Shown piece by piece: positions 477 through 63,011 of a stretch of DNA of 64,000 nt. The position numbers and the translations under genes are program-made. The stretch lies in sequence record NC_019526.1. One strand, given 5' to 3'. The notes beneath the pieces are model-generated. The model had not been told where the DNA came from and did no database searches. It saw only the letters and a list, made by a program, of their open reading frames with translations. Position 1 is the first letter of the stretch. Each line of letters starts with the position of its first letter.

Positions 477-637
477 ATTCTGACTATTATTACAGTACTG
501 TACAGTACAATATGTATTTAAGTTCTTTTATGAATTTAAAAACGAGTTCAATAGACAAAGACGTGTATGAAAGTATATTGGGTTGTTTGAATCATAGTAT
601 TCATAAATTATATAAATTAAAAGGTACGTTGGGATGA
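464..637 (+). CDS. small hypothetical protein (57 aa, not in the ORF track)
   Basis: MQQINSDYYYSTVQY...HKLYKLKGTLG; fills the gap, overlaps the next ATG (ATGA), C-terminus resembles 634..816. Confidence 0.65.
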   Translation: MQQINSDYYYSTVQYNMYLSSFMNLKTSSIDKDVYESILGCLNHSIHKLYKLKGTLG

Positions 638-816
638 TTGATAATTACCAACAAATAAAAACACTATCTGAGTATTATAAAATTGATACTAATTATATAG
701 TACGGATGCCTGTAGAGTTAGATGAATCTTTACATAAGTGGAGATATTTTTCAGTATTAAATAATTTGAATTTTGTCATTAATAGTTTATATGAATTACA
801 AGGTAAATTACCATGA
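634..816 (+). CDS. small hypothetical protein (C-terminal LYELQGKLP)
   Basis: ATGA overlaps on both sides; C-terminus shared with 464..637 and 1563..1781. Confidence 0.7.
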   Translation: MIDNYQQIKTLSEYYKIDTNYIVRMPVELDESLHKWRYFSVLNNLNFVINSLYELQGKLP

Positions 817-1160
817 AATATAAACGATGTGATGATGGATATCTGGCTGCCAGGTATTACAGTAAATTTGTATCTACAACTAATAAAGATGATCTGCTAT
901 TACTTATGTTAGTAGGTACAATTAAACAAGAAATGGCGGCTGAAAGATATATCAACACGTTAATACATAAAATGGTACTTAAACACAGGCTGGTTAAAAT
1001 TAGAACTATTGGTGGTTATGAACCTTATAAGTTTGGTGTATTTTATCTTGACAATACTAATTTAGTTGCTTCTGATTCTATTATAATTTGTGAGTCCATT
1101 GAAAAAGCGGTTCAGTACTGTAAAAATAATAATTATAGATTGATTGGTACAGAGGTATGA
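813..1160 (+). CDS. family B (GTxxQ) domain protein with C-terminal extension
   Basis: LLMLVGTIKQEMAAERYINTL. Confidence 0.7.
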   Translation: MKYKRCDDGYLAARYYSKFVSTTNKDDLLLLMLVGTIKQEMAAERYINTLIHKMVLKHRLVKIRTIGGYEPYKFGVFYLDNTNLVASDSIIICESIEKAVQYCKNNNYRLIGTEV

Positions 1161-1163
1161 ATT

Positions 1164-1415
1164 ATGATGAGTTTAAAATTTTATGACCATTTACCAAAAA
1201 GTATTAAATTCAGTAATATACAATATTATACATTAGAAGATTGGGAAATGCATTATCGAAAGATACTCGGTTTTTCTTTGGGATTTGAAGAAACTGAGTA
1301 CCAGGAAATACATTATAATTATTATATTGAAATATTAAAATGTATGATACATAAAGATTATGAAATTTTAATTTCCAGATATATAGTGACGAGTAAAAAT
1401 GGATCAAGAAACTAA
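1164..1415 (+). CDS. hypothetical protein, divergent family B-like
   Basis: EETEYQEIHYNYYIEIL. Confidence 0.6.
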   Translation: MMSLKFYDHLPKSIKFSNIQYYTLEDWEMHYRKILGFSLGFEETEYQEIHYNYYIEILKCMIHKDYEILISRYIVTSKNGSRN

Positions 1416-1566
1416 GAAGAAGTTAACAGAACTTATTGAAGCATCTATTAATGCTGAGGGTGCTTTCTTTGAGCACTACGATAAGTACGATAAAAAAGGA
1501 CGAGTATTGTGGGAGAAGCGTAATAGTACCAGGAAGGAGTTGGATGAATTTATTTCTAAATTGTGA
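1399..1566 (+). CDS. small hypothetical protein (55 aa, not in the ORF track)
   Basis: MDQETKKKLTELIEAS...ELDEFISKL fills the gap between neighbours. Confidence 0.6.
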   Translation: MDQETKKKLTELIEASINAEGAFFEHYDKYDKKGRVLWEKRNSTRKELDEFISKL

Positions 1567-1781
1567 GGAAATTAGTGAATAGTCCAAATGGTCGTGCATC
1601 TATATCACAACTATATTTGTATAATCTTAAATTATCTTATATTATAAAATCAATAAAAACTAAAAATAACTTCATTGGTTTGCCTAATTATGTAAGAGAA
1701 ATGGAGATAGATTCATTTGTTAAGGATATGATAGAAATATATAAAATTCAAGGTAAGTTACCACCGTTTGATGAGTTGTAA
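1563..1781 (+). CDS. small hypothetical protein (C-terminal YKIQGKLPP)
   Basis: Shares C-terminal motif with 634..816. Confidence 0.65.
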   Translation: MRKLVNSPNGRASISQLYLYNLKLSYIIKSIKTKNNFIGLPNYVREMEIDSFVKDMIEIYKIQGKLPPFDEL

Positions 1782-1821
1782 TACTATCCACTTCATACCC
1801 ACCGTGTGTCTTTTTAAACAC

Positions 1822-1850
1822 TTGACTTCCAGTCAAATCTGTGTTATTGT
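1822..1850 (+). promoter_or_regulatory. sigma70-type promoter
   Basis: TTGACT-17 bp-TATTGT in an intergenic gap. Confidence 0.55.
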
Positions 1851-1882
1851 TATTATTGTAATAATCAAAATGGTACAATATA

Positions 1883-2167
1883 ATGACCAAAAGTGAATAC
1901 TATTCTGTACTGAATATTCAGGAAGCGTGTAAAGGTTTATACTTTACTCCTTATATTGAAGTGATGCGTTCTGTATTTAAATTACTACAGAAGGAATTTT
2001 CTACAAAGTACAAAGGAACACTAATTTCTGTAAAAAACGATAATGAAGTTTTTGATGTTTTAATTAATAGTTATAGTATAACATTTATTCTTTGTTATTT
2101 TGAAACATCGGGTTCTATAGCAGTGACAAGAAAATATTTTGATTCTGATACAAAGATTAGGAAATAA
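1883..2167 (+). CDS. family C hypothetical protein
   Basis: LLQKEFSTKYKGTLISV. Confidence 0.7.
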   Translation: MTKSEYYSVLNIQEACKGLYFTPYIEVMRSVFKLLQKEFSTKYKGTLISVKNDNEVFDVLINSYSITFILCYFETSGSIAVTRKYFDSDTKIRK

Positions 2168-2227
2168 AAATAGTGTAATCTTTTATACATCCAACAATCT
2201 TTAAAAATAACGGGTAATTACTGTATC

Positions 2228-2503
2228 ATGACTGAACAAGAATACAAATGCACAACGCATGTAATCGGAGTATTAGGTGATATTGAATCAAAGTATCGCA
2301 GTACAATGCTTACTATCTTATCAATGCTACAAACTGATTTTAATAAAAAGTACGCACAAAGAAAAGTACAAATAACTGTAGGTTCAGGTGTTAAAACCAA
2401 AACAATCAAGGGGTATTGTATTGGATTTAGATATGTGTATTTTACTATTACCAAAGGATATAAAAGAGAGTATTTTAATGAATTCACTACTTTGTGTTCA
2501 TAA
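2228..2503 (+). CDS. family C hypothetical protein
   Basis: LQTDFNKKYAQRKVQI; close paralog of 8378..8650. Confidence 0.75.
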   Translation: MTEQEYKCTTHVIGVLGDIESKYRSTMLTILSMLQTDFNKKYAQRKVQITVGSGVKTKTIKGYCIGFRYVYFTITKGYKREYFNEFTTLCS

Positions 2504-2512
2504 AGAGGGATT

Positions 2513-2779
2513 ATGAAAAGAGATAAACATTATAAACAAATTGAATTCATTTATAAACTCGCACGATATAGTGATGCTTACACTTATATTTCTTATAAAT
2601 CATATCTCAAAGAAGTTGTTGTTTTGTATCTTAAAAAGTACAAATCAAAAAAGGTTGATTCTGGTACTTACATCATAGACGATATTAAATTTTTATACGG
2701 TGAACTTCGTGTATACCAGAGAAGAGTAAGTGATGGTATGCTTTTGTGGGATTCTATCTGGAATACAAAAATAGATTAA
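2513..2779 (+). CDS. family C-like hypothetical protein
   Basis: VLYLKKYKSKKV; GAGG SD. Confidence 0.65.
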   Translation: MKRDKHYKQIEFIYKLARYSDAYTYISYKSYLKEVVVLYLKKYKSKKVDSGTYIIDDIKFLYGELRVYQRRVSDGMLLWDSIWNTKID

Positions 2780-2781
2780 TT

Positions 2782-3210
2782 ATGAAAACATTAGAAGAAT
2801 TAATTAGAATAAGTAAAAATATCATTTATATTAACAATGTATTCAGTACTGGAAAAGGTCATCTTATTGTTGATGATGTTAGATACTTTTATTCTGAGTC
2901 TGCTCATATATGGTACAGTTCATTTTATGTTCGTGATTTTGAACCCGAGTGGGATTGTATTTCTTATTCGAGGGGTTTAAGTACAGTCACAACTATTTCT
3001 TCTATGAAGGAACATACTCACACACTCGATTGTTCAGAATTTGATTTAAGTGAAGAGATGCTTTTTCAGTACAGTACCATGTATTCCAGTCTTGAGCTGG
3101 AAGCTATATTCGTTAAAGTGTACCTGGATAAATTCACTGATATAGATGAATTTTGTATAAATCTCTCACAATACCCTTCGTATTGCGAAAAACTTGGATT
3201 AATACCATGA
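2782..3210 (+). CDS. family A (FQYST motif) protein
   Basis: LSEEMLFQYSTMY; start moved to ATG 2782. Confidence 0.8.
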   Translation: MKTLEELIRISKNIIYINNVFSTGKGHLIVDDVRYFYSESAHIWYSSFYVRDFEPEWDCISYSRGLSTVTTISSMKEHTHTLDCSEFDLSEEMLFQYSTMYSSLELEAIFVKVYLDKFTDIDEFCINLSQYPSYCEKLGLIP

Positions 3211-3623
3211 GTTACAGAAGTTCATTATTTTTTGCACAAAAGGTATACTATACCGTTCAGTGCTTTTATAATTCAGAATTTGATAATACAGTACTAAAAA
3301 AGACAGGAAATGACAGTGTATTTGATTACTACGATTATCAGAATTTATTTTTTGGTTATCCGGTCTTCAATACTACACAGATGGATTGTCATATTTCTCT
3401 TGATTTTTCTTTTATGACATTCAATTCATATAGTACAGACTATATGTCACTCGATTCTGTGGTTAGATTAAATTCTGATAACATAGTGTTAATTCATAAT
3501 AGCGAGGATTATGATTTCTTTAGTAATTCTTATACTGAAAAAGAATTGTTTGTTTGTACTGTATTTTCGTACCTAATTCTTAATAAATGCAAACCATTCT
3601 ATCTGGATTTGAGTATAATTTAA
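3207..3623 (+). CDS. family A-related protein (shared C-terminus, motif degenerate)
   Basis: TVFSYLILNKCKPFYLDL; paralog of 4245..4640. Confidence 0.7.
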   Translation: MSYRSSLFFAQKVYYTVQCFYNSEFDNTVLKKTGNDSVFDYYDYQNLFFGYPVFNTTQMDCHISLDFSFMTFNSYSTDYMSLDSVVRLNSDNIVLIHNSEDYDFFSNSYTEKELFVCTVFSYLILNKCKPFYLDLSII

Positions 3624-3642
3624 AGAGGGGATTTTCATTATC

Positions 3643-4245
3643 ATGCTAGAGAATTTTTATTCAAATTTAATGAAAGCTTTCCCTACAAAAGAGGAAGTTG
3701 GATTAGGCCATGTATCAGATTTGGATTATGATATTTACGTTGCTATGGTAATTGTTGGTCAAGCAAAAAGTGTTCATGAGGTTCATGAACGATGGACAAA
3801 ACTGGCGAATGAAAGAAATTATACAAATGAATTGAAATCTGAACCTGAAATACAAGGTAGATTGTTTATTGTAAAAAATACAAGAACATTAGAATTAATT
3901 TTGATACCTACTAAAGAAACATTTAATGAGATATCAAAAACCGAAGAATATCTTTTGAATAATCATGGAATTTCTTATAAATCAAAAGACTGGATTATTG
4001 ATACAGTACTGTACGTTTCTCGCAAAGATAGAGGATTAACAAGAGTACATGATTTATATTCTTCTGTTCTAAAAATTGTTACACCAAATGAATTTGGAAT
4101 ATTCAATTCAGAACAATATGATATAATCATGAACTGTATTAATGATAAAATATCAAGATGTTATAATCGTTGTGTATATCCAAATGGATATCATAGTAAT
4201 AAAAATTTTCACTACAAATACAATGAAATATGGAATAAAGTATAA
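3643..4245 (+). CDS. hypothetical protein
   Basis: 200-aa ORF with GAGG SD; no recognised motif. Confidence 0.75.
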   Translation: MLENFYSNLMKAFPTKEEVGLGHVSDLDYDIYVAMVIVGQAKSVHEVHERWTKLANERNYTNELKSEPEIQGRLFIVKNTRTLELILIPTKETFNEISKTEEYLLNNHGISYKSKDWIIDTVLYVSRKDRGLTRVHDLYSSVLKIVTPNEFGIFNSEQYDIIMNCINDKISRCYNRCVYPNGYHSNKNFHYKYNEIWNKV

Positions 4246-4640
4246 TGAACAACAACGAATCACTTTTTCTTGCTAAAAAGATATATAACACTGCACAACT
4301 TTTTTATAATTCAAGTTTCAACTGTACTGGATTTAAGAGAAGTTTTGTGGGGCTGGATTATGAATACAAATTTTCCAATTTAATTGTTTTCAGTACTGAA
4401 AATACATATGGCTGTTTCTTTTCTTTTAAAAAAAATATTATAATTTTTGATAATGAATTCGCCGGTATAATTGAATGTGAATACGAAGATGGAACACGTA
4501 ATTATCTTTCCCGTATAATGAATTTACATCAACAGTGCCAACCTGTGAATACAAAGGATAATATGTCAGTACTGACAATTTTTTCGTACTTAGCCCAGAT
4601 GAAGTGTCAACCATTCTATATGGATTTACGCATAATTTAG
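4245..4640 (+). CDS. family A-related protein (motif degenerate)
   Basis: TIFSYLAQMKCQPFYMDL; paralog of 3207..3623. Confidence 0.7.
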   Translation: MNNNESLFLAKKIYNTAQLFYNSSFNCTGFKRSFVGLDYEYKFSNLIVFSTENTYGCFFSFKKNIIIFDNEFAGIIECEYEDGTRNYLSRIMNLHQQCQPVNTKDNMSVLTIFSYLAQMKCQPFYMDLRII

Positions 4641-4652
4641 GGGGTATATTTT

Positions 4653-4952
4653 GTGTTAAAAATTCACTGTCGTAACGGTATATTTTTTTGTAACACTACA
4701 ATACATAACGGAAAGTTGATTTATCATAAAAGTGAGGATTCTTTTTATTATACCACCCATGTGAATTCTAAAAAAATGCACAAAATTATTGATTATTCAG
4801 GATTACAAGAGGATGAACTTTTCCAGATGCATTTAGTATATGATAAAGTACTTAATTTGGATTTTTACACTTTAACATATATTCAGACCAAAATGCGAGA
4901 ATTATCAAAAATTTATACTGCTGATTTTAAGATTATAACACCTGAAATATAA
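4653..4952 (+). CDS. family A protein
   Basis: LQEDELFQMHLVY; GTG start. Confidence 0.75.
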   Translation: MLKIHCRNGIFFCNTTIHNGKLIYHKSEDSFYYTTHVNSKKMHKIIDYSGLQEDELFQMHLVYDKVLNLDFYTLTYIQTKMRELSKIYTADFKIITPEI

Positions 4953-4953
4953 G

Positions 4954-5289
4954 ATGAATAAAAATATAAGAACCAATAATATTATGTGGTGCACTGTATA
5001 TAAACTGATTTATACTACTTATGCTCTTATACGATTGGTTAGCAAAAATAATACAAAAATCGATGTTTATTTCTATAATGACGGTACCAAAGAACACTAC
5101 TTAACAGAGGGTAATGATATATATGAAATTCATGATTTATGCTCTTTGAGCACAGAAGAACATTTCCAATTACTCACAGTATGGGATTATAAAACAGATA
5201 TTGATTTTGTTATTTCTGCACATAAACGCATAGAGGAACTTAAAAAGGATGAGTTTTTCAATCGTGTCGATACAGTGATTGAATATTAA
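4954..5289 (+). CDS. family A protein
   Basis: LSTEEHFQLLTVW. Confidence 0.75.
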   Translation: MNKNIRTNNIMWCTVYKLIYTTYALIRLVSKNNTKIDVYFYNDGTKEHYLTEGNDIYEIHDLCSLSTEEHFQLLTVWDYKTDIDFVISAHKRIEELKKDEFFNRVDTVIEY

Positions 5290-5456
5290 AAGAGCGTACA
5301 AAAAAATGATTTATGATAAAAATGTTGAGTATATAACCCAGTTCATAGTACTATCATACACCAGATATGGCAGTTCTGGTTCCAGGTATATTGATAGTAT
5401 ACTTAAACAACATATTGAGTTTAATGTTATCAATAACAAGAAAGGTTAATATAGAA

Positions 5457-5921
5457 ATGGGTTTTGATACAAGAGAAGGTGCACTCTTTTATGCAAATCA
5501 AATATGTAATTTAGTTTTGTATTACAAAAGTAATGAAAATTTATTAGATGAATATAAATGTTTGTATTCTAAAGTCGATGATGTATTAAGAATTTCTTTA
5601 GAAATAGAACACAAAAACCCATTCCCTGAATCAATTATTGATTTTCAAGAAAAATATATTAATTATATTCCAGGTAAAGAATGTGAATTAATTCTTTCCG
5701 ATGTATTTGGCCATAGTATCAAAATCGATCCCAGTGTTCTAAATGAAGAATTGAATACCAGTACAGAAGAAGGTTATTTCCAGAAGAGTACTATATACAA
5801 TTCTGATGAATTGTTCTGCATTATTCTTTTTGAAAATATAGTGCGTAAAATTCCTTTTCAATTCTACATTGATTTAGAAACAATTAATTACCTAATAAAA
5901 GAGAAAAATTATGAGATATAA
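5457..5921 (+). CDS. family A protein
   Basis: STEEGYFQKSTIY; ATG 5457 follows AAGG SD. Confidence 0.8.
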   Translation: MGFDTREGALFYANQICNLVLYYKSNENLLDEYKCLYSKVDDVLRISLEIEHKNPFPESIIDFQEKYINYIPGKECELILSDVFGHSIKIDPSVLNEELNTSTEEGYFQKSTIYNSDELFCIILFENIVRKIPFQFYIDLETINYLIKEKNYEI

Positions 5922-6246
5922 AATATACAAAAGCGACCTCCTTGTTGTAGCTGAATACATTTGTGATGATATGTTCAATATGTTCAAAAATGAACATGAT
6001 TTTATTTTAAATTTAAGTACTAAAAAATTTAAGTTGAACTATTATGGTTCATATGAATTATCTGAACACTATTCAATTGATTTAAATGATTGTACTCAGA
6101 TGCAGGACGATGAATTGTTTCAATACTCTTTAATTTTTTATTTTAATTTATTAAGTTTAAAGGATATTGTATCGCTTCAAAAAGAAATGCTTACTATACA
6201 AGATGATACATATGGCACTAAAGAAATTAATTTTATTGACTTTTGA
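5911..6246 (+). CDS. family A protein
   Basis: MQDDELFQYSLIF. Confidence 0.8.
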   Translation: MRYKIYKSDLLVVAEYICDDMFNMFKNEHDFILNLSTKKFKLNYYGSYELSEHYSIDLNDCTQMQDDELFQYSLIFYFNLLSLKDIVSLQKEMLTIQDDTYGTKEINFIDF

Positions 6247-6250
6247 ATGT

Positions 6251-6286
6251 ATACGTGATAATATACGTGATAATATATGTGGTATG
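6251..6286. repeat. 12-bp tandem repeat (2 exact copies + 1 degenerate)
   Basis: ATACGTGATAAT ATACGTGATAAT ATATGTGGTATG, intergenic. Confidence 0.7.
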
Positions 6287-6319
6287 GGTGATACAAAACC
6301 ATAAAAAGAGGAATATATA

Positions 6320-6685
6320 GTGCAGACAAATCAAGAAATACAAATAAAATTAAAAATTAATAATTATTATAATAATACAGTTAGTGCTTCATATAATGAA
6401 GAAGTTTTGTACGAAATAAATTATTCCATGAATGATTCCATTTTTACATTTCGTGAGTACAATGGTATCACTTTAATAAGATCTTATATAATTCCAGTTA
6501 TTGATTATACCGAAATGCAAGATGATGAATTGTTTCAGTACTCTTTAATATACGATCTGGAACATGTTATTCCCTTTGACTCTATGGTTGAATTGCAGGG
6601 TATTATGAAATCACGTACACAACTACAAGGTGAGATTGAATACACATTTATCACAATGAATAAGAAGAATTATTATGTACAATGA
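6320..6685 (+). CDS. family A protein
   Basis: MQDDELFQYSLIY; GTG start with GAGG SD. Confidence 0.8.
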   Translation: MQTNQEIQIKLKINNYYNNTVSASYNEEVLYEINYSMNDSIFTFREYNGITLIRSYIIPVIDYTEMQDDELFQYSLIYDLEHVIPFDSMVELQGIMKSRTQLQGEIEYTFITMNKKNYYVQ

Positions 6686-6914
6686 ATGTATTAAATCTCA
6701 CATAGAAAAAATAACTCTAATGTCTCCTGAGTATTTTACTTTACGAAATGCAAAAATTTATCGTAAAATACAAAAAGATGTTGTTAATTATTATCTTTCA
6801 TTGTACTGCAATGGAACTAAATCAAATTATATCATAATAGATATAAGGTCTATAATTGATGGTACATTTAGTATCCAGTACAGAGTGTACCAAAGGAGTT
6901 ACAATCATGACTAG
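6675..6914 (+). CDS. hypothetical protein
   Basis: Overlaps both neighbours in the operon. Confidence 0.6.
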   Translation: MYNECIKSHIEKITLMSPEYFTLRNAKIYRKIQKDVVNYYLSLYCNGTKSNYIIIDIRSIIDGTFSIQYRVYQRSYNHD

Positions 6915-7188
6915 AGATGAATATTTTGTATTGCAATGCATCAATTCATTTTACTACGATATTACGATTAATTACAAATACAGGGAAGTATTATTCGAGT
7001 ATATTTGTGAAGCAGAAGAGTACTACAACAAAAAAATAAAAGGTGCACCATGCACAATAAAAAACATAAATGAAGATGCTATACTGGAGAATATACACTG
7101 TATTGGATTTAAACATATATTATTCACTGTATATATGTTTAATCTAAAGAATTCAACAATAACTCGATACGAGAATATAGAATTTTGA
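6907..7188 (+). CDS. family C-like hypothetical protein
   Basis: AEEYYNKKIKGAPCTI; AGGAG SD before ATG 6907. Confidence 0.7.
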   Translation: MTRDEYFVLQCINSFYYDITINYKYREVLFEYICEAEEYYNKKIKGAPCTIKNINEDAILENIHCIGFKHILFTVYMFNLKNSTITRYENIEF

Positions 7189-7409
7189 AAACAACAAAAA
7201 ATATATCAAAACAACAAAGTACTGATCTCATGTTTAAAGCTTATTTACAAGTGGAATTGGAAAGTAGTACTTCTCCAGAGTGGTCGAGTTATCGTTTATC
7301 TGAATTGTTCATGTTGTATCATTTGGGTACTACTAGTCAGGATGAAATGTCGGAGTTCTACATTTATGCACTTATTCATAAAATGAATTATGTACACAAT
7401 GGTAAGTAA
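7185..7409 (+). CDS. family B protein
   Basis: ELFMLYHLGTTSQDEMSEFYIYAL. Confidence 0.7.
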   Translation: MKTTKNISKQQSTDLMFKAYLQVELESSTSPEWSSYRLSELFMLYHLGTTSQDEMSEFYIYALIHKMNYVHNGK

Positions 7410-7613
7410 ATGAAAACATTAACAATTCCTCAGTGGTCTAATTTGTATGATTATTATCATGAAAAATACAAAACCAATTGCAAATCCAGTAAAGACGTGA
7501 TAAGATGTATTGAAGTGACATTGATTGCTTCACTTGGTACAGATAAACAAACATATTGTGTAGAGCAATATGTTGCAATGTTAATTGATTACACAAAGGA
7601 GTTTCAACATTAG
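7410..7613 (+). CDS. family B protein
   Basis: EVTLIASLGTDKQTYCVEQYVAML. Confidence 0.75.
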   Translation: MKTLTIPQWSNLYDYYHEKYKTNCKSSKDVIRCIEVTLIASLGTDKQTYCVEQYVAMLIDYTKEFQH

Positions 7614-8043
7614 TACAAATTTATCTAGTGCAGAGTTAGATTTTTTAGTTCGAAAATGTGATCCTTATGTCCAAAAATTACTAAAGAAATGTAAAACATA
7701 TTCATACACAAATGTTAAATTACAGTTTGAATTTACTACAATAAAAATTTATTCCTGTGTGTTAATTGATTCTGATATTATACCAAAAAGAAGTTCATGT
7801 GAAATTCCTTTGGAAATCTTTTATAAGAAACATTATAAATTATTAAAGAAGTTGAATTATATTCAGTACTACAGTAATGCACATTTATATACTGAATTGC
7901 AATGTATGTATAATCAGTACCTTGAAAGCATGGGGGTATCTATTGATGATTTTGATGGATATCCTTTAAGTACTGAACAGATTAATTTATACAAATTTGT
8001 TTTTAATTTTAATTGTTCATTTTTAAGGAATGAATTAATATGA
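7585..8043 (+). CDS. hypothetical protein
   Basis: 152-aa ORF in the operon; start uncertain. Confidence 0.6.
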   Translation: MITQRSFNISTNLSSAELDFLVRKCDPYVQKLLKKCKTYSYTNVKLQFEFTTIKIYSCVLIDSDIIPKRSSCEIPLEIFYKKHYKLLKKLNYIQYYSNAHLYTELQCMYNQYLESMGVSIDDFDGYPLSTEQINLYKFVFNFNCSFLRNELI

Positions 8044-8378
8044 AAAACGAATTGCGTGGTTTATTGAGTACTCAAACGTTTCTTAAACGAATATCCACAG
8101 AAGAAATAGATTTTATCAGGAAAGAATTACTAAATCAATTATTTGATAGTGCCATTAAAAATTTTGCAAATGATCTTACTGTAATACATAAAGATAAAAT
8201 TGTATCAATTAAAATTCTAGTGTGTAATACAAATACAAATACGTTTGAATACATTAAATCCGATTTTGTTATAAATGAATTTAGTTGTTCTTTATTCAAT
8301 GCTACCTGTCTTGTTGATAGTATTGAGGGTTACATCAGAATAACACGAGTACATTGTAAATTTATAGTGGATGGGTAA
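8040..8378 (+). CDS. hypothetical protein
   Basis: Overlapping start/stop coupling. Confidence 0.65.
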   Translation: MKNELRGLLSTQTFLKRISTEEIDFIRKELLNQLFDSAIKNFANDLTVIHKDKIVSIKILVCNTNTNTFEYIKSDFVINEFSCSLFNATCLVDSIEGYIRITRVHCKFIVDG

Positions 8379-8650
8379 TGCAAAAATATGAATTTGACTC
8401 AGTAGATATCATCATAAGTACTTTGTGGGATATGGATCCTTCTTATACAACAGTGTATTATAAAATATTCTCTTCAATACAAGATGATTTTAATAAAAAA
8501 TACGCACAAAAAGAAGTACTCATAGAATCGAATAATAAAGTAATAAAAGAAAAAATATCGTACTACATTATTTCCTTTGGTGTATTGAAATTTATTTGTA
8601 CAAATGCATTTAGTAGACAATACTTCGGCGACAGGTGTCAATTATTATGA
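8378..8650 (+). CDS. family C protein
   Basis: IQDDFNKKYAQKEVLI. Confidence 0.75.
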   Translation: MQKYEFDSVDIIISTLWDMDPSYTTVYYKIFSSIQDDFNKKYAQKEVLIESNNKVIKEKISYYIISFGVLKFICTNAFSRQYFGDRCQLL

Positions 8651-55154: not shown

Positions 55155-55614
55155 AACATGGTTAAATATTGCTAAAGCGGTTGCAGAGGAAAGTAAATGT
55201 ATTTCACACAAAGTTGGTGCAGTAATTGTAAAGAATAACAGGATTCTCAGTACTGGGTATAATGGTACAAGTTCTGGGGCAGTTAATTGTTGTGATGCGA
55301 ATAGTCATTTAATTCATAATAATGAATTTCAAAATTGGGTATCAGATGAAGCTAAACATGAACATCATGAGTGGAGTAATATTCATGAAATTCACGCAGA
55401 AATGAATGCTTTATTGTATAGCTCTCCACAAGAACGACAGGGTGCAACTCTTTATAGTACAATGCAACCCTGCTATACCTGTTCTAAATTAATTGCAGGA
55501 AGTGGTATTACTAATGTAATTTATGAAAAAGAATACCCACGTACACCACCCGAAGCAATTGAAGTTTTAAAAGATGCTGGTATTACAGTTAATAAATTAT
55601 CAGATTTGGAATAA
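55144..55614 (+). CDS. cd: dCMP deaminase
   Basis: S.C....VGAVIV, GYNG, HAEMNA, PCYTCSK. Confidence 0.93.
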   Translation: MKHKTWLNIAKAVAEESKCISHKVGAVIVKNNRILSTGYNGTSSGAVNCCDANSHLIHNNEFQNWVSDEAKHEHHEWSNIHEIHAEMNALLYSSPQERQGATLYSTMQPCYTCSKLIAGSGITNVIYEKEYPRTPPEAIEVLKDAGITVNKLSDLE

Positions 55615-55681
55615 TTATTTTAACATAATAAATGTACTTTTGGATTATATACAATTAGTATCTTTTGAGTTAAAATAATAC

Positions 55682-55717
55682 AAAAAAAGGAGAACTATAA
55701 AGTTCTCCTTAATTTTT
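55682..55717. terminator. bidirectional terminator between convergent genes
   Basis: A-run, AGGAGAAC-tataaa-GTTCTCCT, T-rich tail. Confidence 0.75.
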
Positions 55718-55720
55718 AAA

Positions 55721-56359
55721 TTATTCTACTGTGACTTCAACAGTATCAGTTTTGTTTCCATCATTGGTGGTTACAGTTATAGTTGCAGTACCAGTAGCTA
55801 CATATGAAACTAGTCCAGTACTATCTACAGTACAAACACCCTCTGCACTGGAAGACCATGTAACAGATTTATCGGTTGCATCCAATGGTAGTACTGAGAT
55901 ACTCAATTGTTCAGTACCACCTACAGCACCAGTAAGCGTTTTTGGTGAAACGGTAACGCTTTCTACATGAACGACTGGTGGTTTTACGTTAGTGCGTCTA
56001 AAAATAAATCCACCATTGTCCAACTTGACTTTGTTGAGTTGGTAGAGTATACTGAATCCCTCGACACCGGTTTTTGGGTCAGATTCTTTGATACAAAAGG
56101 TATTTACTGCTAGTGAATCAGCAATATCTTCGTCAGCATCGGAATATTTTAGTGCTACCAGATTTGAATCGCGGTGAACTAGTCTAATAAATGTATAAAC
56201 AGTTCCATCTGTGGAAATCAAATCATACACATCAAAAGTTCTTTGTTTGTATACAAATAGGTCGCCAACATGAACTGTACCATTAACATTTGCCGCAGTG
56301 ACTTTCAATCCATCAACAACAAACGGATAATGGTTTTGTTTTGCGATAACACGTGCCAT
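55721..56359 (-). CDS. Ig-like (Big_2) domain protein, probably virion-associated
   Basis: C-terminal VESVTVSPKT...ATDKSVTWSSS...VDSTGLV....GTATITVTTNDGNKT; GGGAG SD on the minus strand. Confidence 0.85.
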   Translation of the reverse strand: MARVIAKQNHYPFVVDGLKVTAANVNGTVHVGDLFVYKQRTFDVYDLISTDGTVYTFIRLVHRDSNLVALKYSDADEDIADSLAVNTFCIKESDPKTGVEGFSILYQLNKVKLDNGGFIFRRTNVKPPVVHVESVTVSPKTLTGAVGGTEQLSISVLPLDATDKSVTWSSSAEGVCTVDSTGLVSYVATGTATITVTTNDGNKTDTVEVTVE

Positions 56360-56458
56360 TATTTTCTCCCTTTTATAAAAACTTGTAAACGTTATTAAAT
56401 TTATGTTTATTATAAAATTTTATATAACCTTACTATTATTTACCAATTTAGAGGAAAT

Positions 56459-57055
56459 ATGTTTATTGTACTAAAAGAATTTTTATATAATACATTAATT
56501 GCTTTTTCACTTATTTTCCCATCACATGATATTCAACAGAATGTAACTGTAAACGATAGTAACGTATTAATTTTTAATACGAAAATAAACGACGAATCAG
56601 TACAAAGAGCGGAAACATTATATAAGAAATATAAGTACAAAACCATTTCTATTACCTCACCGGGAGGTGATGTGAATTCTAGTTTCGAATTAGCAGTCTT
56701 TGCTTCTGACCATAATATTAAAGTTCATGTACCACAGTACTGTGCAAGTGCATGTACAGTTATATTTTTTGCTGCTGATAAACAAAACAGAGTTATGGAT
56801 AAAGATGCTATTATTGCTATTCATAATGTTTCGGTTGTGGCTAATGATGATATTTCTGGTAATGAAACCATATCTATCAATACTGCCATGGATTTAATGA
56901 AAGATACATCAGAAATCGTAGCAGCTATGTATAGTTTATATGCATATGTTGGTATTCCAGGTGAAATCCTGATGAGAACAAGCACTATGCACGGAGCTGA
57001 TTCTTATCAAATAACAAAAAAACAACTCCAAATGTGGGGCATTTTAGAAAAATAA
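56459..57055 (+). CDS. exported ClpP/crotonase-fold serine-protease-like protein
   Basis: N-terminal hydrophobic segment; TSPGG.V, CASAC, R, IAIH. Confidence 0.7.
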   Translation: MFIVLKEFLYNTLIAFSLIFPSHDIQQNVTVNDSNVLIFNTKINDESVQRAETLYKKYKYKTISITSPGGDVNSSFELAVFASDHNIKVHVPQYCASACTVIFFAADKQNRVMDKDAIIAIHNVSVVANDDISGNETISINTAMDLMKDTSEIVAAMYSLYAYVGIPGEILMRTSTMHGADSYQITKKQLQMWGILEK

Positions 57056-57075
57056 ATCTGTACAAGAATATCATT

Positions 57076-57142
57076 TGTGATATAATAATTAAACAGAGAG
57101 TGATGTAGCTCTCTTTTATATAGCTTAGGGAGTACTAAGACA
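57076..57142 (+). promoter_or_regulatory. extended -10 promoter plus a two-hairpin leader with the SD in a loop
   Basis: TGTGATATAAT; AGAGAG-tgatgtag-CTCTCT; CTTAG-ggagta-CTAAG, then 3 nt, then ATG. Confidence 0.65.
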
Positions 57143-58207
57143 ATGAAAGAAAAAGTTTATGTATATATTGGACGTTTCCAAATTCCACATATTGGTCATG
57201 AAGAAGTCCTCAAACATGCGATCAAAATTGCAGATCGTGTTATCATTCAGGTCGGTTCAAGTGAACTGGCTCGTGATCCAAAAAACCCATTCACGTTTGA
57301 AGAACGTAAGTCAGTACTAGAAGAAATTACAAAACGTGTAGCTCAAGATGAATGGAATAAAGGTCGAACTGTTAAAATCGATATTATGCCATTACATGAT
57401 TATGTATATGATAATAATGCATGGCTAAAAGAAGTACAGGATAATGTTAAAACATGTACTTCAAGTAATGATATTACTATTACTGGTTGTCGTAAAAATG
57501 GTGATAACAGTACTGAATATCTTAACTATTTTCCTCAATGGAAAAATGACTTCATTAACGAAGTACAAAGTAATGCAAAGGGTACTATTAGTAGTACTGA
57601 ACTACGCGAAGCTTTCTTTGTCTCTGGTAAAGTTCCAACTGAATTTGTTTCAAAAGAAACAACAGAATTTCTAGAAAATTTTGTCAGTACTAAACCAGAT
57701 GTATTCGATAATCTTATTAAAGAATATGAATTCATTAATCGTTATATTGAACAAATGAAAGAAGCACTACCTTATGATATTCCATTTTTGACGGGTGATG
57801 CTATCGTTGTGGCTGCGGGACATGTACTCTTGGGACGTCGAAGAACTCAACCAGGCTTGAATAACCTCTGTATCCCTGGGGGATTCATACAGGCATTTTC
57901 TGATAAAGATCAAATTGATACGGCTATTCGTGAACTTAAAGAAGAAACAAAAATTGATGTACCAGAAAAAGTACTTCGTGGTAATATAGTAAACGTAATG
58001 GATTTTTCTGATATGAATCGTTCCTTGCGTTGGCGTATTCTCACTAAAGCAGTACTGATCCAGTTACCAGACACTACATTACCAAAAGTAAAAGGGAGTG
58101 ATGATCTAAAACATGCTCAATGGATCCCACTGAGTGATGTTGAAAAATATCGTGATCAATTTTTTGAAGATCACTATAGTATCTTACAAATTATGCTAAA
58201 ATTATAA
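57143..58207 (+). CDS. nadM: bifunctional NMN adenylyltransferase / Nudix (ADP-ribose pyrophosphatase)
   Basis: IGRFQIPHIGH, GSS....D.KNPF, ISSTELR, Nudix PGGF...AIRELKEET, GSDD. Confidence 0.95.
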   Translation: MKEKVYVYIGRFQIPHIGHEEVLKHAIKIADRVIIQVGSSELARDPKNPFTFEERKSVLEEITKRVAQDEWNKGRTVKIDIMPLHDYVYDNNAWLKEVQDNVKTCTSSNDITITGCRKNGDNSTEYLNYFPQWKNDFINEVQSNAKGTISSTELREAFFVSGKVPTEFVSKETTEFLENFVSTKPDVFDNLIKEYEFINRYIEQMKEALPYDIPFLTGDAIVVAAGHVLLGRRRTQPGLNNLCIPGGFIQAFSDKDQIDTAIRELKEETKIDVPEKVLRGNIVNVMDFSDMNRSLRWRILTKAVLIQLPDTTLPKVKGSDDLKHAQWIPLSDVEKYRDQFFEDHYSILQIMLKL

Positions 58208-58225
58208 TAAAAAAATAGAACATGG

Positions 58226-59251
58226 ATGTTCATAATGTATAGAATAATAAAAACTGATTATAATTATGATTTTTATTATATGTTACCACAAGATATAATC
58301 AATTATAATTCTAGATATCAAGAACCACAAAAATTGATAGATAATATTAATAATATAAAAATACAAAATTTAACTGTTATTGGTTTTTTTATAAAACATG
58401 AAAATGAATATAAAGCAACCAAAACAAAAATTTTAGTTGCATATCATAATATATATTACATCATATTATATAATAATTTAATTAGTACTGGTAAGTTTAC
58501 TGGAAGAGTAGAATGTAATAATGAAAATATATATTATTACTTATATTCAAAAAGACCACTAAGTACTAACCATTTAGAAATTATTGATATACCAAATAAA
58601 AAGAAAATACGAGCTAAAGATTATATTAAAGTTAGATGTACTAAAGATGGACATGAATATTATATAACATTAAATAAATTCTTTCAAAATAAAAAATGTC
58701 CAAAATGCACTAATCAAATAGCTTATGATATGTATAATTTAACAAAATTTGTTTATCAAAAAAGACCACCCGAATATACTGGTATATACATAACATATAT
58801 ACCATTTAATATTAATGGCAAAGATGATTATTTATATTTGAAATGTTCTTATTGTGAAACTGAATGGAATACAACAAATATTCATTCTTATGTGAACGGA
58901 GGAACTGGTTGTCCTCATTGTAAAATATCCAAAGGTGAACGAAAAATAAAGGAACTATTATTACATAATAATATAAAATTTGAATTTCAAAAAAAATTTA
59001 AAAATTGTAGAAACAAAAAACAATTACCATTTGATTTTTTTATTAATGATGTAAATGTTCTAATAGAATATGATGGTATACAACATTTTCAACCTGTTGA
59101 AATATTCGGTGGAAATAAAAATTATGAACAAACATTGAAAAATGATCAAATTAAAAATCAGTACTGTAAAGATAACAACATCAGACTGATAAGAATTCGT
59201 TATGATGAAGACCCAAAAGAAATATTGACGCGAGAGGGTATCATCAAGTAA
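58226..59251 (+). mobile_element. free-standing homing-type endonuclease: zinc ribbons + PD-(D/E)xK (DUF559/Vsr-like) domain
   Basis: CPKC, CSYC, GCPHC.ISKGE, LPFDF, IEYDG.QH, D..KN.YC..NNI.LIRI. Confidence 0.8.
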
Positions 59252-59282
59252 AAAGAATTATTACACAGAGTAATAATAAATC

Positions 59283-59328
59283 AGAGAACGTAGTAGTTCT
59301 CTAACTTAAACTAAGGGAGTCTTAGAAA
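59283..59328 (+). promoter_or_regulatory. two-hairpin leader with the SD in a loop
   Basis: AGAGAAC-gtagta-GTTCTCT; CTAAG-ggagt-CTTAG, then 3 nt, then ATG. Confidence 0.6.
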
Positions 59329-60801
59329 ATGAAAAACGTAAATCCAAATGTAAACTTTATTTTAAACTGCGACAGCTATAAGATTCAACATAGAAAAATG
59401 CTCAAAAAGCATGTTGATGGTTATTACAGTACTATTGTACCTCGTAAAAGCTCTCCACATAGCAACCATGTAGTTGTGGCTGGTTTGCAATACACAATTA
59501 ATACCTATATCAATATTCAGATTACCAAAGAAGATGTTGATGAAGCTGAAATTGAAATTCGTGAACAAGGTTCACGTTTTGATAGAACTATTTGGGATAA
59601 AATCGTCAATGAGTTTGGTGGTAAAGTTCCAGTAAAAATTAGTGCTATTAAAGAAGGTACAGTTGTTCCAGTTCAATCAGTAGTTTGTGTTGTTGAAGCT
59701 AAAGATGAGTTTGCATTTTTGGCTAGTTATATTGAAACTTGTATTCAACGTGGTGTATGGTATAGCAGTACTGTAGCATCTGAATGTCGTGCAATGAAAA
59801 AAATTCTTGCTGATGTAATGCAACGTCATGCTGGTCATAAGAATGTAGATTATCATTTCCACAACTTTGGAGATCGTAGTGCAACTTGTTTTGAACATGC
59901 ATATGTAGCTGGTATGGCACATGCAATTATGTTCAATGGTTCGGATAGTTTAACTTCAAATCGTTATATTAAAGCTCACTATAATACTACCAAAGCGTAT
60001 CTGAGTTCAGTTGACGCTACTGAACATAGCGTTATGTGCAGTAATAGTGATGCTGAACATCGCAATGATTATGGTGCAGCAGTAATGGCGGTAGATCATT
60101 GGGAAGAACAAGTTACAATGTGGGAAGAAGATGGATTAGGTGTACCAGTAACTTCATGTGTTATTGATACTTATAATGATTATCGCTTTGTCCGTGACTT
60201 TATCGGTACTAAATTAAAAGACCGTATTGTTGAAATTGGCAAACGAGGTGGTCGCTTTGTTCTTCGTCCTGATTCACGAATTCCTAAAGAAATTTGTATT
60301 GATGTAATCGAAATTCTAATGGAAAAGTTTGGTTATACTATTAACGAACATGGTTACAAAGTACTACCACCATATATTGGAGTAATTCAAGGTGATGGTG
60401 TTAATTTCGATAGTATTCATGAAATTCTAGATATTCTTGATGAAAAGAAATTATCCCTTGAAAACATTGTATTTGGTTGTGGTACCAAATTGGTTAACCC
60501 TGAACGTGGTCGTGATCTTTATAGTTGGTCAATGAAAGGTACTGCACAACACATCGAAGATGAACGTGAATGGCAAGACCTATTCAAAGATCCAGCAGGT
60601 GAACCAGGCAAACGTTCACATAAAGGGCGTGTAGTAACCTGGAAATGTAAAGTATCTGGTAAGATTTTTGTTGATCGTGATGATCTTGATAAAGTTAATC
60701 ATTTCATTGAAAATCTACTTGTACCAATGTATGACTGCGGTAAAATTATGAATTTCAGTACTTTTGATGAAGTTCGTGAGCGTGCTAACGTAGGTATCTA
60801 A
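59329..60801 (+). CDS. nadV: nicotinamide phosphoribosyltransferase
   Basis: DSYK..H, HNFGDRS, ATEHSVM, VIDTY, LRPDS, IQGDG, VFGCG. Confidence 0.95.
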   Translation: MKNVNPNVNFILNCDSYKIQHRKMLKKHVDGYYSTIVPRKSSPHSNHVVVAGLQYTINTYINIQITKEDVDEAEIEIREQGSRFDRTIWDKIVNEFGGKVPVKISAIKEGTVVPVQSVVCVVEAKDEFAFLASYIETCIQRGVWYSSTVASECRAMKKILADVMQRHAGHKNVDYHFHNFGDRSATCFEHAYVAGMAHAIMFNGSDSLTSNRYIKAHYNTTKAYLSSVDATEHSVMCSNSDAEHRNDYGAAVMAVDHWEEQVTMWEEDGLGVPVTSCVIDTYNDYRFVRDFIGTKLKDRIVEIGKRGGRFVLRPDSRIPKEICIDVIEILMEKFGYTINEHGYKVLPPYIGVIQGDGVNFDSIHEILDILDEKKLSLENIVFGCGTKLVNPERGRDLYSWSMKGTAQHIEDEREWQDLFKDPAGEPGKRSHKGRVVTWKCKVSGKIFVDRDDLDKVNHFIENLLVPMYDCGKIMNFSTFDEVRERANVGI

Positions 60802-60807
60802 TATATT

Positions 60808-61377
60808 TTGGAGAGTCATTATGGCTCTCCAATCTTTTTAATTAAAGTAATAAAGGTATATAATGTGTTTATTGGTTTTAAAATAGTTATTATCTTCTTT
60901 ATATGGTTTATTACATATCAAATAATTGAAGAAATCAGTACTAAATTCTCTTCAGATAATTTCTTAGTAGACGTTTGTTTATTATCGATTGCAGTACTTG
61001 GTTTTTTGATCATACCAGTTATATTTTCATATTTTATATGAAAAATGTTGACATTTTTTTCTTCATAAGATATAGTATAGATATCAACAATTAACAACGG
61101 ATATCAAAAAATGTTCCAACATCTTTTGGATTTTTTCTGTACTGTAAACATTGAAAAACAAGCTAAGTTCATTATTGCAGAACTGGTCTTGTTTTACTTA
61201 GGTGGCTTGGTAATTACAATGTGTGCATTTTTACATAGTGATATTAATCTTGGTATTTCCTATGCCAAAAGTGAGAATAAACCATCATTACTACTCAAGT
61301 TTATTAGATGTTTATTGTACTTAGTGTATATCTTATATATTGTTGGATTTTTTGGTGTATATTATGTAATTCATTAG
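60808..61377 (+). CDS. two small membrane proteins (60808..61041, 61111..61377)
   Basis: Two hydrophobic segments each. Confidence 0.6.
61048..61076 (+). promoter_or_regulatory. sigma70-type promoter
   Basis: TTGACA-17 bp-TATAGT. Confidence 0.75.
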
Positions 61378-61387
61378 GAATTGATTG

Positions 61388-62125
61388 ATGATTAGTACTA
61401 AATTCATTAAAAAAGCTGGTGATAAAAGATTACTAATCATTTCTGGAAATGGATTGTCAATGGATAGTGGTTTTGACTTATATGACATTCCTGATAATTT
61501 TCAGATAAATGATGTGTGTAATATTGCCAGTTTAGGTACAAAATATCACGTAGTTCATTCTTATTATAATACTCTTAGAGTTAAATTAAAAGATATTGAA
61601 CCAAACGAAATGCATTACTATATTAAATCATTACAAGATGAGTATGGTGATAACTTTTTACACATGACCAGTAATGTAGATGATTTATATACAAGAATTG
61701 GTGGTACCGAATTAAAATTGCATGGTAATATTAAAGAGGTTATAGAAAACTATACCGCTGATGGTTCTGAAATAGAAATAAAAGAATTAGGTTATGAACC
61801 ATATATTCCATGTAGTGGTATTTTTTCTAAACCAGGTGTTACATTAATTGGTGAGTTCCATAGTTATTTTTATGGATATAAAATCCCAATTTATGAAGAA
61901 CGAAATGAAATACTAAAATCATTAAATGAAAATGATACTGTAGTAGTAATTGGAAGTTCTGATTCAGTACTGAAATGGAGCCATTTAATAAATGAGAAAT
62001 GTTACACAGTACTAATCAATATAAGAAAAAATGAAAACGATCATCGTTTCAATGAACGAATTTATAAATCTTGTTCCAAATCTGTATTAGATTTATCTGG
62101 AATAATTTCAAAAAGGATGGTATAG
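61388..62125 (+). CDS. divergent Sir2-family NAD-dependent enzyme
   Basis: ISGNGLSMDSG, TSNVDDL, KLHGN, KPGVTLIGE, VIGSS; Zn-binding CxxC pairs not evident. Confidence 0.85.
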   Translation: MISTKFIKKAGDKRLLIISGNGLSMDSGFDLYDIPDNFQINDVCNIASLGTKYHVVHSYYNTLRVKLKDIEPNEMHYYIKSLQDEYGDNFLHMTSNVDDLYTRIGGTELKLHGNIKEVIENYTADGSEIEIKELGYEPYIPCSGIFSKPGVTLIGEFHSYFYGYKIPIYEERNEILKSLNENDTVVVIGSSDSVLKWSHLINEKCYTVLINIRKNENDHRFNERIYKSCSKSVLDLSGIISKRMV

Positions 62126-62679
62126 TGGAAAAAATTGATTTCGGTACAAGAAGTACCAGAGCCGATTTTGCTTTTTGTTGGATTTTTGCCCGAGATTGTA
62201 CTCCATACTCTGGATATGATGATCAACTTGGAATTGATAAAGTAAATTTAGTACTAGCACAATTACGTTTTGATGGTTGCATTGGGGCGTGTGGTGGTAT
62301 GGTGGAAAGTGATGATAATTCATTAGAAGAAGCTGTACAGCGTGAAGTACTGGAAGAAATTGGTTATACTGTTGATTTAACACATTTAAAACCACTTCTA
62401 AGCTTGCGTTTACCATCAGGCAGCCATTGCCATAGCTATAGTTATGAAGTTGATTACAATGAATTACAAAGCATTAGAGATGGTGCTTATAGAGGAATAC
62501 ATTTCAATCCAGAATGTGCTGGTGTGAATCTTTTACATATTTCAAGATACACAAAAGGTTATGGAAACGAATGTGGATATAATGTATTATTAGAACAACA
62601 CTGGAGTGGTACATCAAAAGAAGAATTTATGTACCTTGTAGAGACAGAAAATCTATTAATTAGTTATTTGAAGGAATGA
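62125..62679 (+). CDS. Nudix hydrolase, NUDT16-like
   Basis: QLRFDGCIGACGGMV...LEEAVQREVLEEIG; GTG start overlaps the upstream TAG, AAGGA SD. Confidence 0.8.
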   Translation: MEKIDFGTRSTRADFAFCWIFARDCTPYSGYDDQLGIDKVNLVLAQLRFDGCIGACGGMVESDDNSLEEAVQREVLEEIGYTVDLTHLKPLLSLRLPSGSHCHSYSYEVDYNELQSIRDGAYRGIHFNPECAGVNLLHISRYTKGYGNECGYNVLLEQHWSGTSKEEFMYLVETENLLISYLKE

Positions 62680-63011
62680 TAATGGGATACCAGTTATTTT
62701 TAGATGATATTCGTTACCCATCAAAATATTATAGTACTGAAATGGTACTATGTAGATCTTATGATGAAGCTGTCAAATATGTAGAAGAACATGGAATTCC
62801 AGAATTTATCAGTTTTGACCATGACCTTGGAGATACTTCTGATAATGAAAAAACTGGTTATTCATTTGCTAAATTTTTGATTGATTATATGATTGATAAT
62901 GGCATCAGTACTGAATTCAAATATAATATTCATAGCTCAAATCCAGTAGGTGCAGATAATATCGATTCTTATCTAAAAGCTGGTTTTAAATATCTAAGAG
63001 AAAATATGTAA
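62676..63011 (+). CDS. receiver-like domain protein (cyclic-phosphate-processing REC family)
   Basis: LFLDDIR.P, RSYDEA, ISFDHDLG, IHSSNPVG. Confidence 0.8.
   Translation: MIMGYQLFLDDIRYPSKYYSTEMVLCRSYDEAVKYVEEHGIPEFISFDHDLGDTSDNEKTGYSFAKFLIDYMIDNGISTEFKYNIHSSNPVGADNIDSYLKAGFKYLRENM

Follow-up and report, generated by a model that had tools for sequence, protein, structure and literature searches.

The 64,000 nucleotides analyzed here (the window) are identical in sequence to positions 248001-312000, plus strand, of the genome of Klebsiella phage vB_KleM_RaK2 (JQ513383/NC_019526), a T4-related jumbo myovirus of the genus Alcyoneusvirus whose genome measures 345,809 bp. They hold ~135 genes, mainly small, mainly on the plus strand, and mostly without an assigned function; the named ones include a Dam-family methyltransferase, an RNA ligase, a polynucleotide kinase, a DNA ligase, a dCMP deaminase, and genes for NAD salvage. 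Their GC content runs from 0.26 to 0.32, in line with the ~28% given in an earlier reading of the same letters (the original prediction). Scattered through these genes and the DNA between them is a short palindrome with a GTAC core, seen as the hexamer AGTACT and the octamer CAGTACTG, which is the subject of this report. The octamer occurs 33 times in the window where dinucleotide shuffles predict 0.29 (the highest count in any shuffle was 2), AGTACT occurs 170 times versus 13.8 expected, and GTAC occurs 503 times versus 149 expected under an order-1 Markov model. Among the palindromes of the window, AGTACT is the most over-represented hexamer and GTAC the most over-represented tetramer, and CAGTACTG is among the top over-represented octamers overall. 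The density of AGTACT stays between 5 and 15 copies per 4-kb bin. The original prediction had counted 30 octamers by eye against fewer than one expected; all 26 positions that it gave do carry the octamer, and the extended palindromes it described at 4387-4402 (16 bp) and 4564-4577 (14 bp) and the seven AGTACT copies it placed at 57121-58200 were likewise found (Table 1).

Such an excess could simply follow from codon usage, from the amino-acid content of the proteins, or from the tRNAs encoded by the phage (AGT Ser, ACT Thr). Frame 0, in which the hexamer reads AGT-ACT, does have the most copies, and both a Ser and a Thr tRNA are encoded by RaK2. We controlled for coding content with a synonymous shuffle, in which synonymous codons were permuted within each gene so that protein sequence and codon usage were preserved. 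Genes contained 148 AGTACT versus 49.8 ± 5.8 expected from this shuffle, 33 CAGTACTG versus 3.6 expected, and 456 GTAC versus 311 expected; permutation of whole codons gave an AGTACT expectation of 20.5. The excess of AGTACT was equal in the three frames under both types of shuffle (2.7-, 3.3-, and 3.3-fold with synonymous codons; 7.7-, 6.8-, and 6.8-fold with whole codons), and it was largest in non-coding DNA, where 6.6 kb of the window holds 22 copies versus 1.6 expected. Because of these per-frame shuffles and intergenic counts, we consider an artifact of codons, amino acids, or tRNAs refuted, with practically no chance of being the explanation. The enrichment therefore survives the coding control that the original prediction had proposed, and its remark that the motif falls in different reading frames holds. 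The pressure leaves its mark on the proteins. Ser-Thr dipeptides occur in the window at 2.2 times expectation versus only 0.8 times for Thr-Ser, the dipeptides Val-Leu, Gln-Tyr, and Gly-Thr occur at 1.6 to 1.95 times, and 79 of the 172 Ser-Thr pairs (46%) are spelled AGT-ACT versus the 13.6% predicted by codon usage. Thus, there is a pressure on the motif at the level of DNA, and it is strong enough to distort protein sequence.

The same enrichment was found over the whole RaK2 genome, where it is graded with word length: 2520 GTAC versus 904 expected (2.8-fold), 937 AGTACT versus 79 expected (12-fold), and 247 CAGTACTG versus 3 expected (82-fold). The positions around GTAC carry information at two flanking bases per side (C-A ... 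T-G) and a weak T/A preference at ±4. The base 5' of AGTACT (n = 937) is most often C, at 47% versus a background of 14.5%; T and A account for 23% each, and G for 7% versus a background of 17%. TCAGTACTGA occurs 73 times in the genome. Extension of the palindrome by one further pair was seen in 45, 37, 36, and 45% of cases for arms 3 to 6 versus 28% by composition, and past arm 6 it falls to chance level (27%). We conclude that the full unit is a palindrome of 12 bp, TTCAGTACTGAA, built on a GTAC core, and its graded profile looks like the energetics of a dimeric DNA-binding protein rather than a discrete restriction or modification word. Since the flanks are uninformative past ±6, the copies are not pieces of a larger repeat; repeats or paralogy as their source were rejected on the same ground, and the paralogue families of the window are small. 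A trinucleotide site for primase was also rejected, as GTA outside GTAC is not enriched (0.95- to 1.16-fold for GTAA, GTAG, and GTAT).

The enrichment was present in all 5-kb bins of the genome and in both gene orientations, and we found no association of the motif with gene starts or ends. In the window, the spacing of AGTACT had a coefficient of variation of 0.84 versus 0.99 ± 0.075 under random placement, and in two independent regions its copies were slightly more even than random (z ~ -2). Two regions are unusual. Directly upstream of the window, a hot region (record 220-245 kb) reaches 39 AGTACT and 19 CAGTACTG per 5 kb. In the tail-spike/depolymerase region (Table 1), GTAC falls to its lowest level, ~1.5 times expectation, and the two longest AGTACT-free gaps of the genome (3.9 and 3.4 kb) both lie there. 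This weak signature is consistent with a recent horizontal acquisition of depolymerase modules which have not yet acquired it.

Just upstream of the window (record 226-243 kb) are ~30 near-consensus immediate-early sigma70 promoters in which the motif occupies a fixed place. Their module reads TTGACA-N8-CAGTACTG-(N0-1)-TATAAT; the motif always follows the -35 box after 8 bp and adjoins the -10 box. Many of them have a second copy, AGTAC, directly against the -35 box on its upstream side. The paired palindromes are 20 bp apart, about two helical turns, and account for the sole spike in the histogram of AGTACT distances. The 8-base stretch that separates the -35 box from the motif is free to vary, and the motif itself is invariant. 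The other strong promoters of the genome, all those of the window included, lack the module. It is also present in E. coli phage 121Q, and in IMG/VR it was seen only in RaK2, 121Q, and one metagenomic relative. The promoters carry what characterizes an operator at a sigma70 promoter, namely a fixed palindrome over the -35 box and spacer, repeated in helical phase.

In four 5' leaders of the early region, a hairpin of 18-22 bp has the motif at its tip (Table 1), where it would form a GUAC tetraloop in the RNA. The stems differ in sequence and keep their pairing (GGGAAT/ATTCCC, GGGATT/AATCCC, and GGGTAT/ATACCC), i.e., the changes are compensatory, and their predicted stability is -10 to -13 kcal/mol. 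These hairpins may be elements of RNA processing or translational control, and they are a minor second use of the motif. Scans of the early region with Rfam and for tRNAs returned no family and no tRNA. A ~1.5-kb stretch free of open reading frames (ORFs) heads the promoter cluster; against an E. coli Fur-box consensus, it has 5 matches at 3 mismatches versus 0.19 expected, which amount to 4 or 5 distinct sites (two pairs overlap), three of them directly adjoining a copy of the palindrome.

Table 1. Features discussed in the text. Coordinates are those of the window unless a record, genome, or retrieved region (L number) is named; a dot marks features without a strand.
Feature	Coordinates	Strand	Remarks
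Dispersed array, 170 AGTACT (33 as CAGTACTG) within 503 GTAC	297..63887	.	Roughly even over genes and intergenic DNA
14-bp palindrome GTACTGTACAGTAC	495..508 (record 248495)	.	Three overlapping GTAC cores
16-bp perfect palindrome TTTTCAGTACTGAAAA	4387..4402 (record 252387)	.	Inside ORF381
14-bp perfect palindrome TGTCAGTACTGACA	4564..4577 (record 252564)	.	Inside ORF381
14-bp perfect palindrome ATTCAGTACTGAAT	36415..36428 (record 284415)	.	
Local cluster, 7 AGTACT copies	57131..58056	.	Inside ORF498 (cytidylyltransferase-like gene)
ORF447, Dam-family (PF05869) adenine methyltransferase	32980..33498	+	E = 1.3e-27; sole DNA-modification gene of the window
Four leader hairpins	L007 28439-28458, 31358-31379, 32246-32265, 36435-36452 (record 228-236 kb)		5-14 nt before the Shine-Dalgarno sequence
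ORF-free stretch heading the early promoters	L007 25590-26980 (record 225.6-227.0 kb)		Fur-box-like matches
ORF290, Serratia-type non-specific DNA/RNA endonuclease	L007 11210-11890		PF01223, E = 8e-37
Tail-spike/depolymerase region	L008 10700-25000 (record 322.7-337 kb)		Weakest enrichment
Extra gene of phage Muenster	Muenster L012 33411-34055		Annotated DNA-binding protein similar to homing endonuclease I-HmuI
Tandem small paralogue families	1883-18856		Largest family at 5367-18856

Counts in related and unrelated genomes (Table 2) place the motif in a defined group. Because it is enriched in the RaK2/121Q/GAP32 group and not in PA5oct, XacN1, T4, and E. coli, we conclude that it is a trait of the enterobacterial clade; the comparison of word counts over the genome and its relatives that the original prediction had called for thus gave enrichment in both. 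Per kilobase, AGTACT is 12-fold more frequent in RaK2 (2.7) than in the E. coli sample (0.22), and CAGTACTG occurs 0.71 times versus 0. The clade shares a second trait, a complete lack of the palindrome GCGC. None is found in the 345,809 bp of RaK2, where 127 are expected, and none in the sampled relatives 121Q (37 expected), GAP32 (44 expected), the IMG/VR relative (20 expected), and Muenster and KP13-7 (8-9 expected), whereas PA5oct, T4, and E. coli (7.1 per kb) have it at normal frequency. The absence of GCGC and the enrichment of GTAC have the same clade distribution. The former suggests a GCGC-specific nuclease, of phage or host origin, to which the phage offers no sites and which it thereby escapes. 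In the distant relative XacN1 (L016, record 100-135 kb), GATC occurs 0 times versus 144 expected and GCGC 58 times versus 135 expected, i.e., a different 4-bp palindrome was excluded in that lineage.

Table 2. Occurrences of AGTACT and CAGTACTG in other genomes (observed / expected).
Genome	Sample	AGTACT	CAGTACTG
121Q, Asteriusvirus	50 kb	221 / 17	48 / 0.7
GAP32, Mimasvirus	50 kb	114 / 14	13 / 0.7
Muenster	50 kb	131 / 11	22 / 0.3
KP13-7	50 kb	133 / 11	26 / 0.3
IMG/VR metagenomic contig	12.6 kb	86 / 4	16 / 0.2
PA5oct, Pseudomonas	50 kb	3 / 14	1 / 0.4
XacN1, Xanthomonas	35 kb	0 / 6	0 / 0.5
T4	40 kb	4 / 8	0 / 0.3
E. coli K-12	50 kb	11 / 5	0 / 0.4

We examined how the sites evolve in a 47.5-kb three-way alignment of RaK2, Muenster, and KP13-7 (~96% identity). 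AGTACT was retained at 91% of positions versus 83% for hexamers in the same codon phase. In a model whose rates were fitted separately for each branch, each codon phase, and each type of base change, there were 27 losses of AGTACT versus 40.2 expected (p = 0.018) and 69 losses of GTAC versus 93.4 expected (p = 0.005), so individual sites are lost ~30% more slowly than matched words; gains numbered 13 versus 9.3 expected for AGTACT and 40 versus 32 for GTAC. Twelve control hexamers of the same composition behaved as the model expects. Over a longer distance, we used GAP32 (20 kb aligned, 68% identity), as only 3 kb of 121Q aligned at the nucleotide level and the motif itself biased that alignment. 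GTAC was shared with GAP32 at 29% of sites versus 27% for words of the same length, and AGTACT at 21% versus 14%, i.e., sites are shared no more than any word. We conclude that the motif consists of many interchangeable copies, each maintained by weak purifying selection and in continual turnover.

GTAC could also arise without functional selection, through a drive of mutation or repair such as a polymerase bias or very-short-patch-like repair. The weaker enrichment in the recently acquired tail-spike genes is what a process dependent on residence time would give, and gains and losses are roughly balanced in simple presence/absence patterns. A drive of this kind should leave a depleted neighbor, and we found no depleted one-step neighbor word genome-wide (GTAT/ATAC 1.16-fold, AGTATT/AATACT 1.42-fold). 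New GTAC sites arose from ATAC (12), GCAC (11), and GAAC (10), that is, by two transitions and one transversion in similar numbers. Given several source words and no depleted neighbor, we attribute the pattern to selection and not to a drive of the very-short-patch type. Existing sites are also lost more slowly than matched words, and neither the graded 12-bp symmetry nor the exact promoter placement is predicted by a mutational drive, which we regard as highly improbable. The repair target suggested in the original prediction is not supported, given that no neighbor is depleted.

The explanation we tentatively favor, with slightly less than even confidence, is that the palindrome is recognized by a dimeric DNA-binding protein with sequence specificity, probably encoded by the phage and specific to the enterobacterial RaK2/121Q/GAP32 clade. 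On the paired best-match copies which bracket the -35 box, this protein would occlude the -35 box and the spacer, and occlusion of the early promoters would repress, or time, immediate-early transcription. With one AGTACT per ~370 bp, the 900-2500 weaker dispersed copies would place this protein over the full length of the phage chromosome, and this genome-wide loading might mark or coat phage DNA for the purposes of protection, compaction, or directing phage machinery to it. The DNA-level pressure, graded symmetry, clade distribution, mode of selection, and promoter geometry are observed; that a protein binds, that it represses, and what the copies across the genome serve are inferred. Among the mechanisms listed in the original prediction, the protein-binding site is the one favored by the 12-bp grading and the ~30 promoters; for a recombination signal, the evidence points neither way.

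Several observations weigh against a binding protein. A symmetric site would be equally expected with a catalytic reader such as a methyltransferase or nickase, and ~10^3 sites per genome copy demand a very abundant protein. A spacer-centered site combined with a site at the -35 edge has the geometry of a repressor operator, and only this geometry suggests an operator function. Each site is under weak selection, and the gain excesses, taken singly, do not reach significance. Because the spacing of GTAC is Poisson-like and the dispersed copies outside the hot region show no helical phasing, only the 3-nucleotide codon period, cooperative arrays are not indicated. Finally, Pfam and PHROGs scans of 30 ORFs, taken from the early region, the neighborhood of the sigma factor, and the nucleases and unassigned ORFs of the window, detected no DNA-binding domain.

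A true analogue of the cyanobacterial highly iterated palindrome would instead be a modification target, in which a phage enzyme methylates or hypermodifies the A or C in GTAC/AGTACT; site density would be selected for protection or for distinction of parental from new DNA, and modification of the promoter copies would time early transcription. We hold this to be unlikely, though it is the strongest of the rival readings. The phage encodes three DNA-modification enzymes, and 272 RaK2 ORFs lack homologues, so an unrecognized enzyme is possible. One of the three, the Dam-family ORF447, is present throughout the motif-bearing clade. PF05869 members are known to act on GATC, for which reason ORF447 is only a weak candidate and is not supported as reader of the motif. 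XacN1 ORF202 was considered as its orthologue, a guess that proved wrong. In Muenster, an extra gene (Table 1) is inserted just upstream of the Dam-family methyltransferase (window ~32960), and RaK2 lacks it. ORF194 is a C5-cytosine methyltransferase with homologues also in rV5-like phages. RaK2 virion DNA is resistant to many restriction enzymes, and the DNA was reported, from bisulfite data not shown, to carry methylated CpG (PMC3622015). We rejected ORF194 as the GTAC enzyme on this report, as CpG is absent from GTAC.

The third enzyme, ORF149, is of the Mom family and has homologues within the Klebsiella genus as well as in unrelated phages of Vibrio, Listeria, and Enterococcus. No homologue is reported among the 121Q-like E. 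coli phages, and one RaK2-like genome has only a degraded fragment. Because the 121Q-like phages bear the motif and lack the gene, ORF149 was rejected as its cause. No cognate endonuclease or methyltransferase gene for GTAC (RsaI/Csp6I/HpyAXII) or AGTACT (ScaI) was recognized, and whereas a restriction-modification site is avoided or neutral, this one is enriched 3- to 12-fold. The preference is graded over 12 bp and is not that of a discrete word, and methylation of 1-2% of bases brings no obvious benefit that scales with density. The modification target named in the original prediction is not supported by these enzyme assignments.

The reader might be a conserved DNA-binding protein of the Enterobacteriaceae hosts, such as SlmA, which would be recruited or titrated by the phage. 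Enterobacteriaceae are the hosts of every motif-bearing phage, the Pseudomonas and Xanthomonas relatives are without the motif, and Fur-box-like host sites are among the features of the early region. No E. coli regulator is known to have a CAGTACTG site; LexA-, TrpR-, and MerR-type readings were dropped on spacing or sequence. The site of SlmA, the nucleoid-occlusion factor of E. coli, is GTGAGTACTCAC, which has an AGTACT core and requires G1, T2, A4, and G5, a purine at position 3, and a pyrimidine at position 6 (PMC3020112). A4, G5, and T6 match the RaK2 motif. Positions 1-3 do not, as 47% of copies have C and 7% have G at position 3 and there is no preference for G1 or T2, and we therefore rejected the SlmA site itself. 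We found no SlmA homologue in RaK2. Moreover, T4, which has the same host, and the host sample are not enriched, and we judge a host reader to be quite improbable.

We give similarly little credence to a site of cleavage or nicking by a phage endonuclease, which would supply 3' ends or nicks for recombination-dependent replication or for loading of the late-transcription clamp. RaK2 has many genes for nucleases, ligase, polynucleotide kinase, and recombination, a dimeric nuclease would be well matched to a palindrome, and the total absence of GCGC shows that some 4-bp-specific activity shaped the clade. However, no GTAC-specific nuclease was recognized, thousands of breaks per genome would be costly, and the fixed positions at early promoters are left unexplained. 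Phages are known to avoid short palindromes, and they normally avoid cut sites. With ORF290 (Table 1), a non-specific nuclease encoded by the phage, one may ask how its DNA escapes degradation.

The two palindromes together allow a broader, speculative proposal, which we consider doubtful at present: that RaK2-like jumbo phages, which have no nucleus, tell their own from host DNA by word content alone, in a self/non-self system encoded in sequence. The ~1000-2500 GTAC-core palindromes of each genome would serve as nucleation points for a phage protein that coats or marks the phage DNA, and host DNA, with 12 times fewer sites and ~7 GCGC per kb versus zero, would be left to phage nucleases, for which the GCGC-specific activity and the non-specific ORF290 are candidates. 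This protein would also shut down the immediate-early promoters. If true, such word-based discrimination would be a functional counterpart of the hydroxymethylcytosine of T4 and the nucleus of phiKZ.

Among known systems, the closest phenomenon is HIP1, and the closest analogues at the level of mechanism are SlmA/Noc sites and phi29 p6. HIP1 is said to have been linked to methyltransferases by Elhai in 2015. Like that element, the RaK2 motif is a palindrome on the scale of an octamer, over-represented by 1-2 orders of magnitude beyond Markov and codon-aware expectation, present in all frames and in non-coding DNA, and kept by selection. HIP1 (GCGATCGC) is the highly iterated palindrome of cyanobacteria (PMC5861425). 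The RaK2 motif differs from it in sequence, in belonging to a lytic phage and not a cellular genome, in being graded over 12 bp and not a discrete octamer, in its lack of a recognized cognate methyltransferase, and in its fixed operator-like positions at promoters. The label "HIP-like" in the original prediction is therefore apt as a description of a frame-independent, DNA-level palindrome and does not extend to a methyltransferase or repair version.

SlmA/Noc sites resemble the motif as 12-bp palindromes with an AGTACT core which are dispersed over a chromosome to mark it. SlmA is a dimeric helix-turn-helix protein, as the RaK2 reader may also be a dimer. They differ at required positions 1 and 3, in the missing SlmA homologue, and in number, with hundreds to thousands of copies per 346 kb in RaK2 versus tens per 4.6 Mb. 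The viral DNA-binding protein p6 of phi29 covers the whole genome and represses early promoters, as is proposed for the RaK2 reader; p6 reads the bendability of DNA and not a sequence word, and the phi29 genome therefore has no iterated motif. The Dcm/Vsr system of E. coli likewise makes a short palindrome, CCWGG, over-represented genome-wide, together with depletion of the neighbor that is the deamination product, and RaK2 shows no such depletion. Chi, uptake sequences, and KOPS are asymmetric dispersed signals, oriented by strand or replication, which share with the RaK2 motif the many interchangeable, weakly selected copies whose density matters. The RaK2 motif differs from these oriented signals because it is palindromic, and its half-sites are balanced genome-wide (616 versus 640) despite a regional bias.

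A search of the literature on these phages, with subscription journals outside it, found no paper on the motif, the promoter module, or the exclusion of GCGC. The signature is real, very strong, clade-wide, and set at the level of DNA, and reading it as a protein-binding site is plausible on the sequence evidence. It implies at least one sequence-reading activity that is central to the infection program. In an entire clade of jumbo phages with therapeutic relevance, a palindrome is built into the genomes densely enough to shape the proteins, is placed at the earliest promoters, and is mirrored by the total exclusion of GCGC. The 12-bp motif offers a concrete bait for its reader, which, if found, would show how jumbo phages without a nucleus organize, protect, or time their large genomes and would touch on the function of highly iterated palindromes in general, a question of long standing. 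In metagenomes, the clade can be recognized by two simple signatures, the motif and the lack of GCGC.

Two minor observations concern the layout of the sequence. The orientation of incomplete half-sites is biased by region: the window has 104 copies of CAGTAC that lack TG after them versus 60 of GTACTG that lack CA before them, and in record 1-48 kb, where genes also lie on the plus strand, the corresponding numbers are 41 and 67. The window also carries several small families of paralogues in tandem (Table 1), the largest with 7 members.

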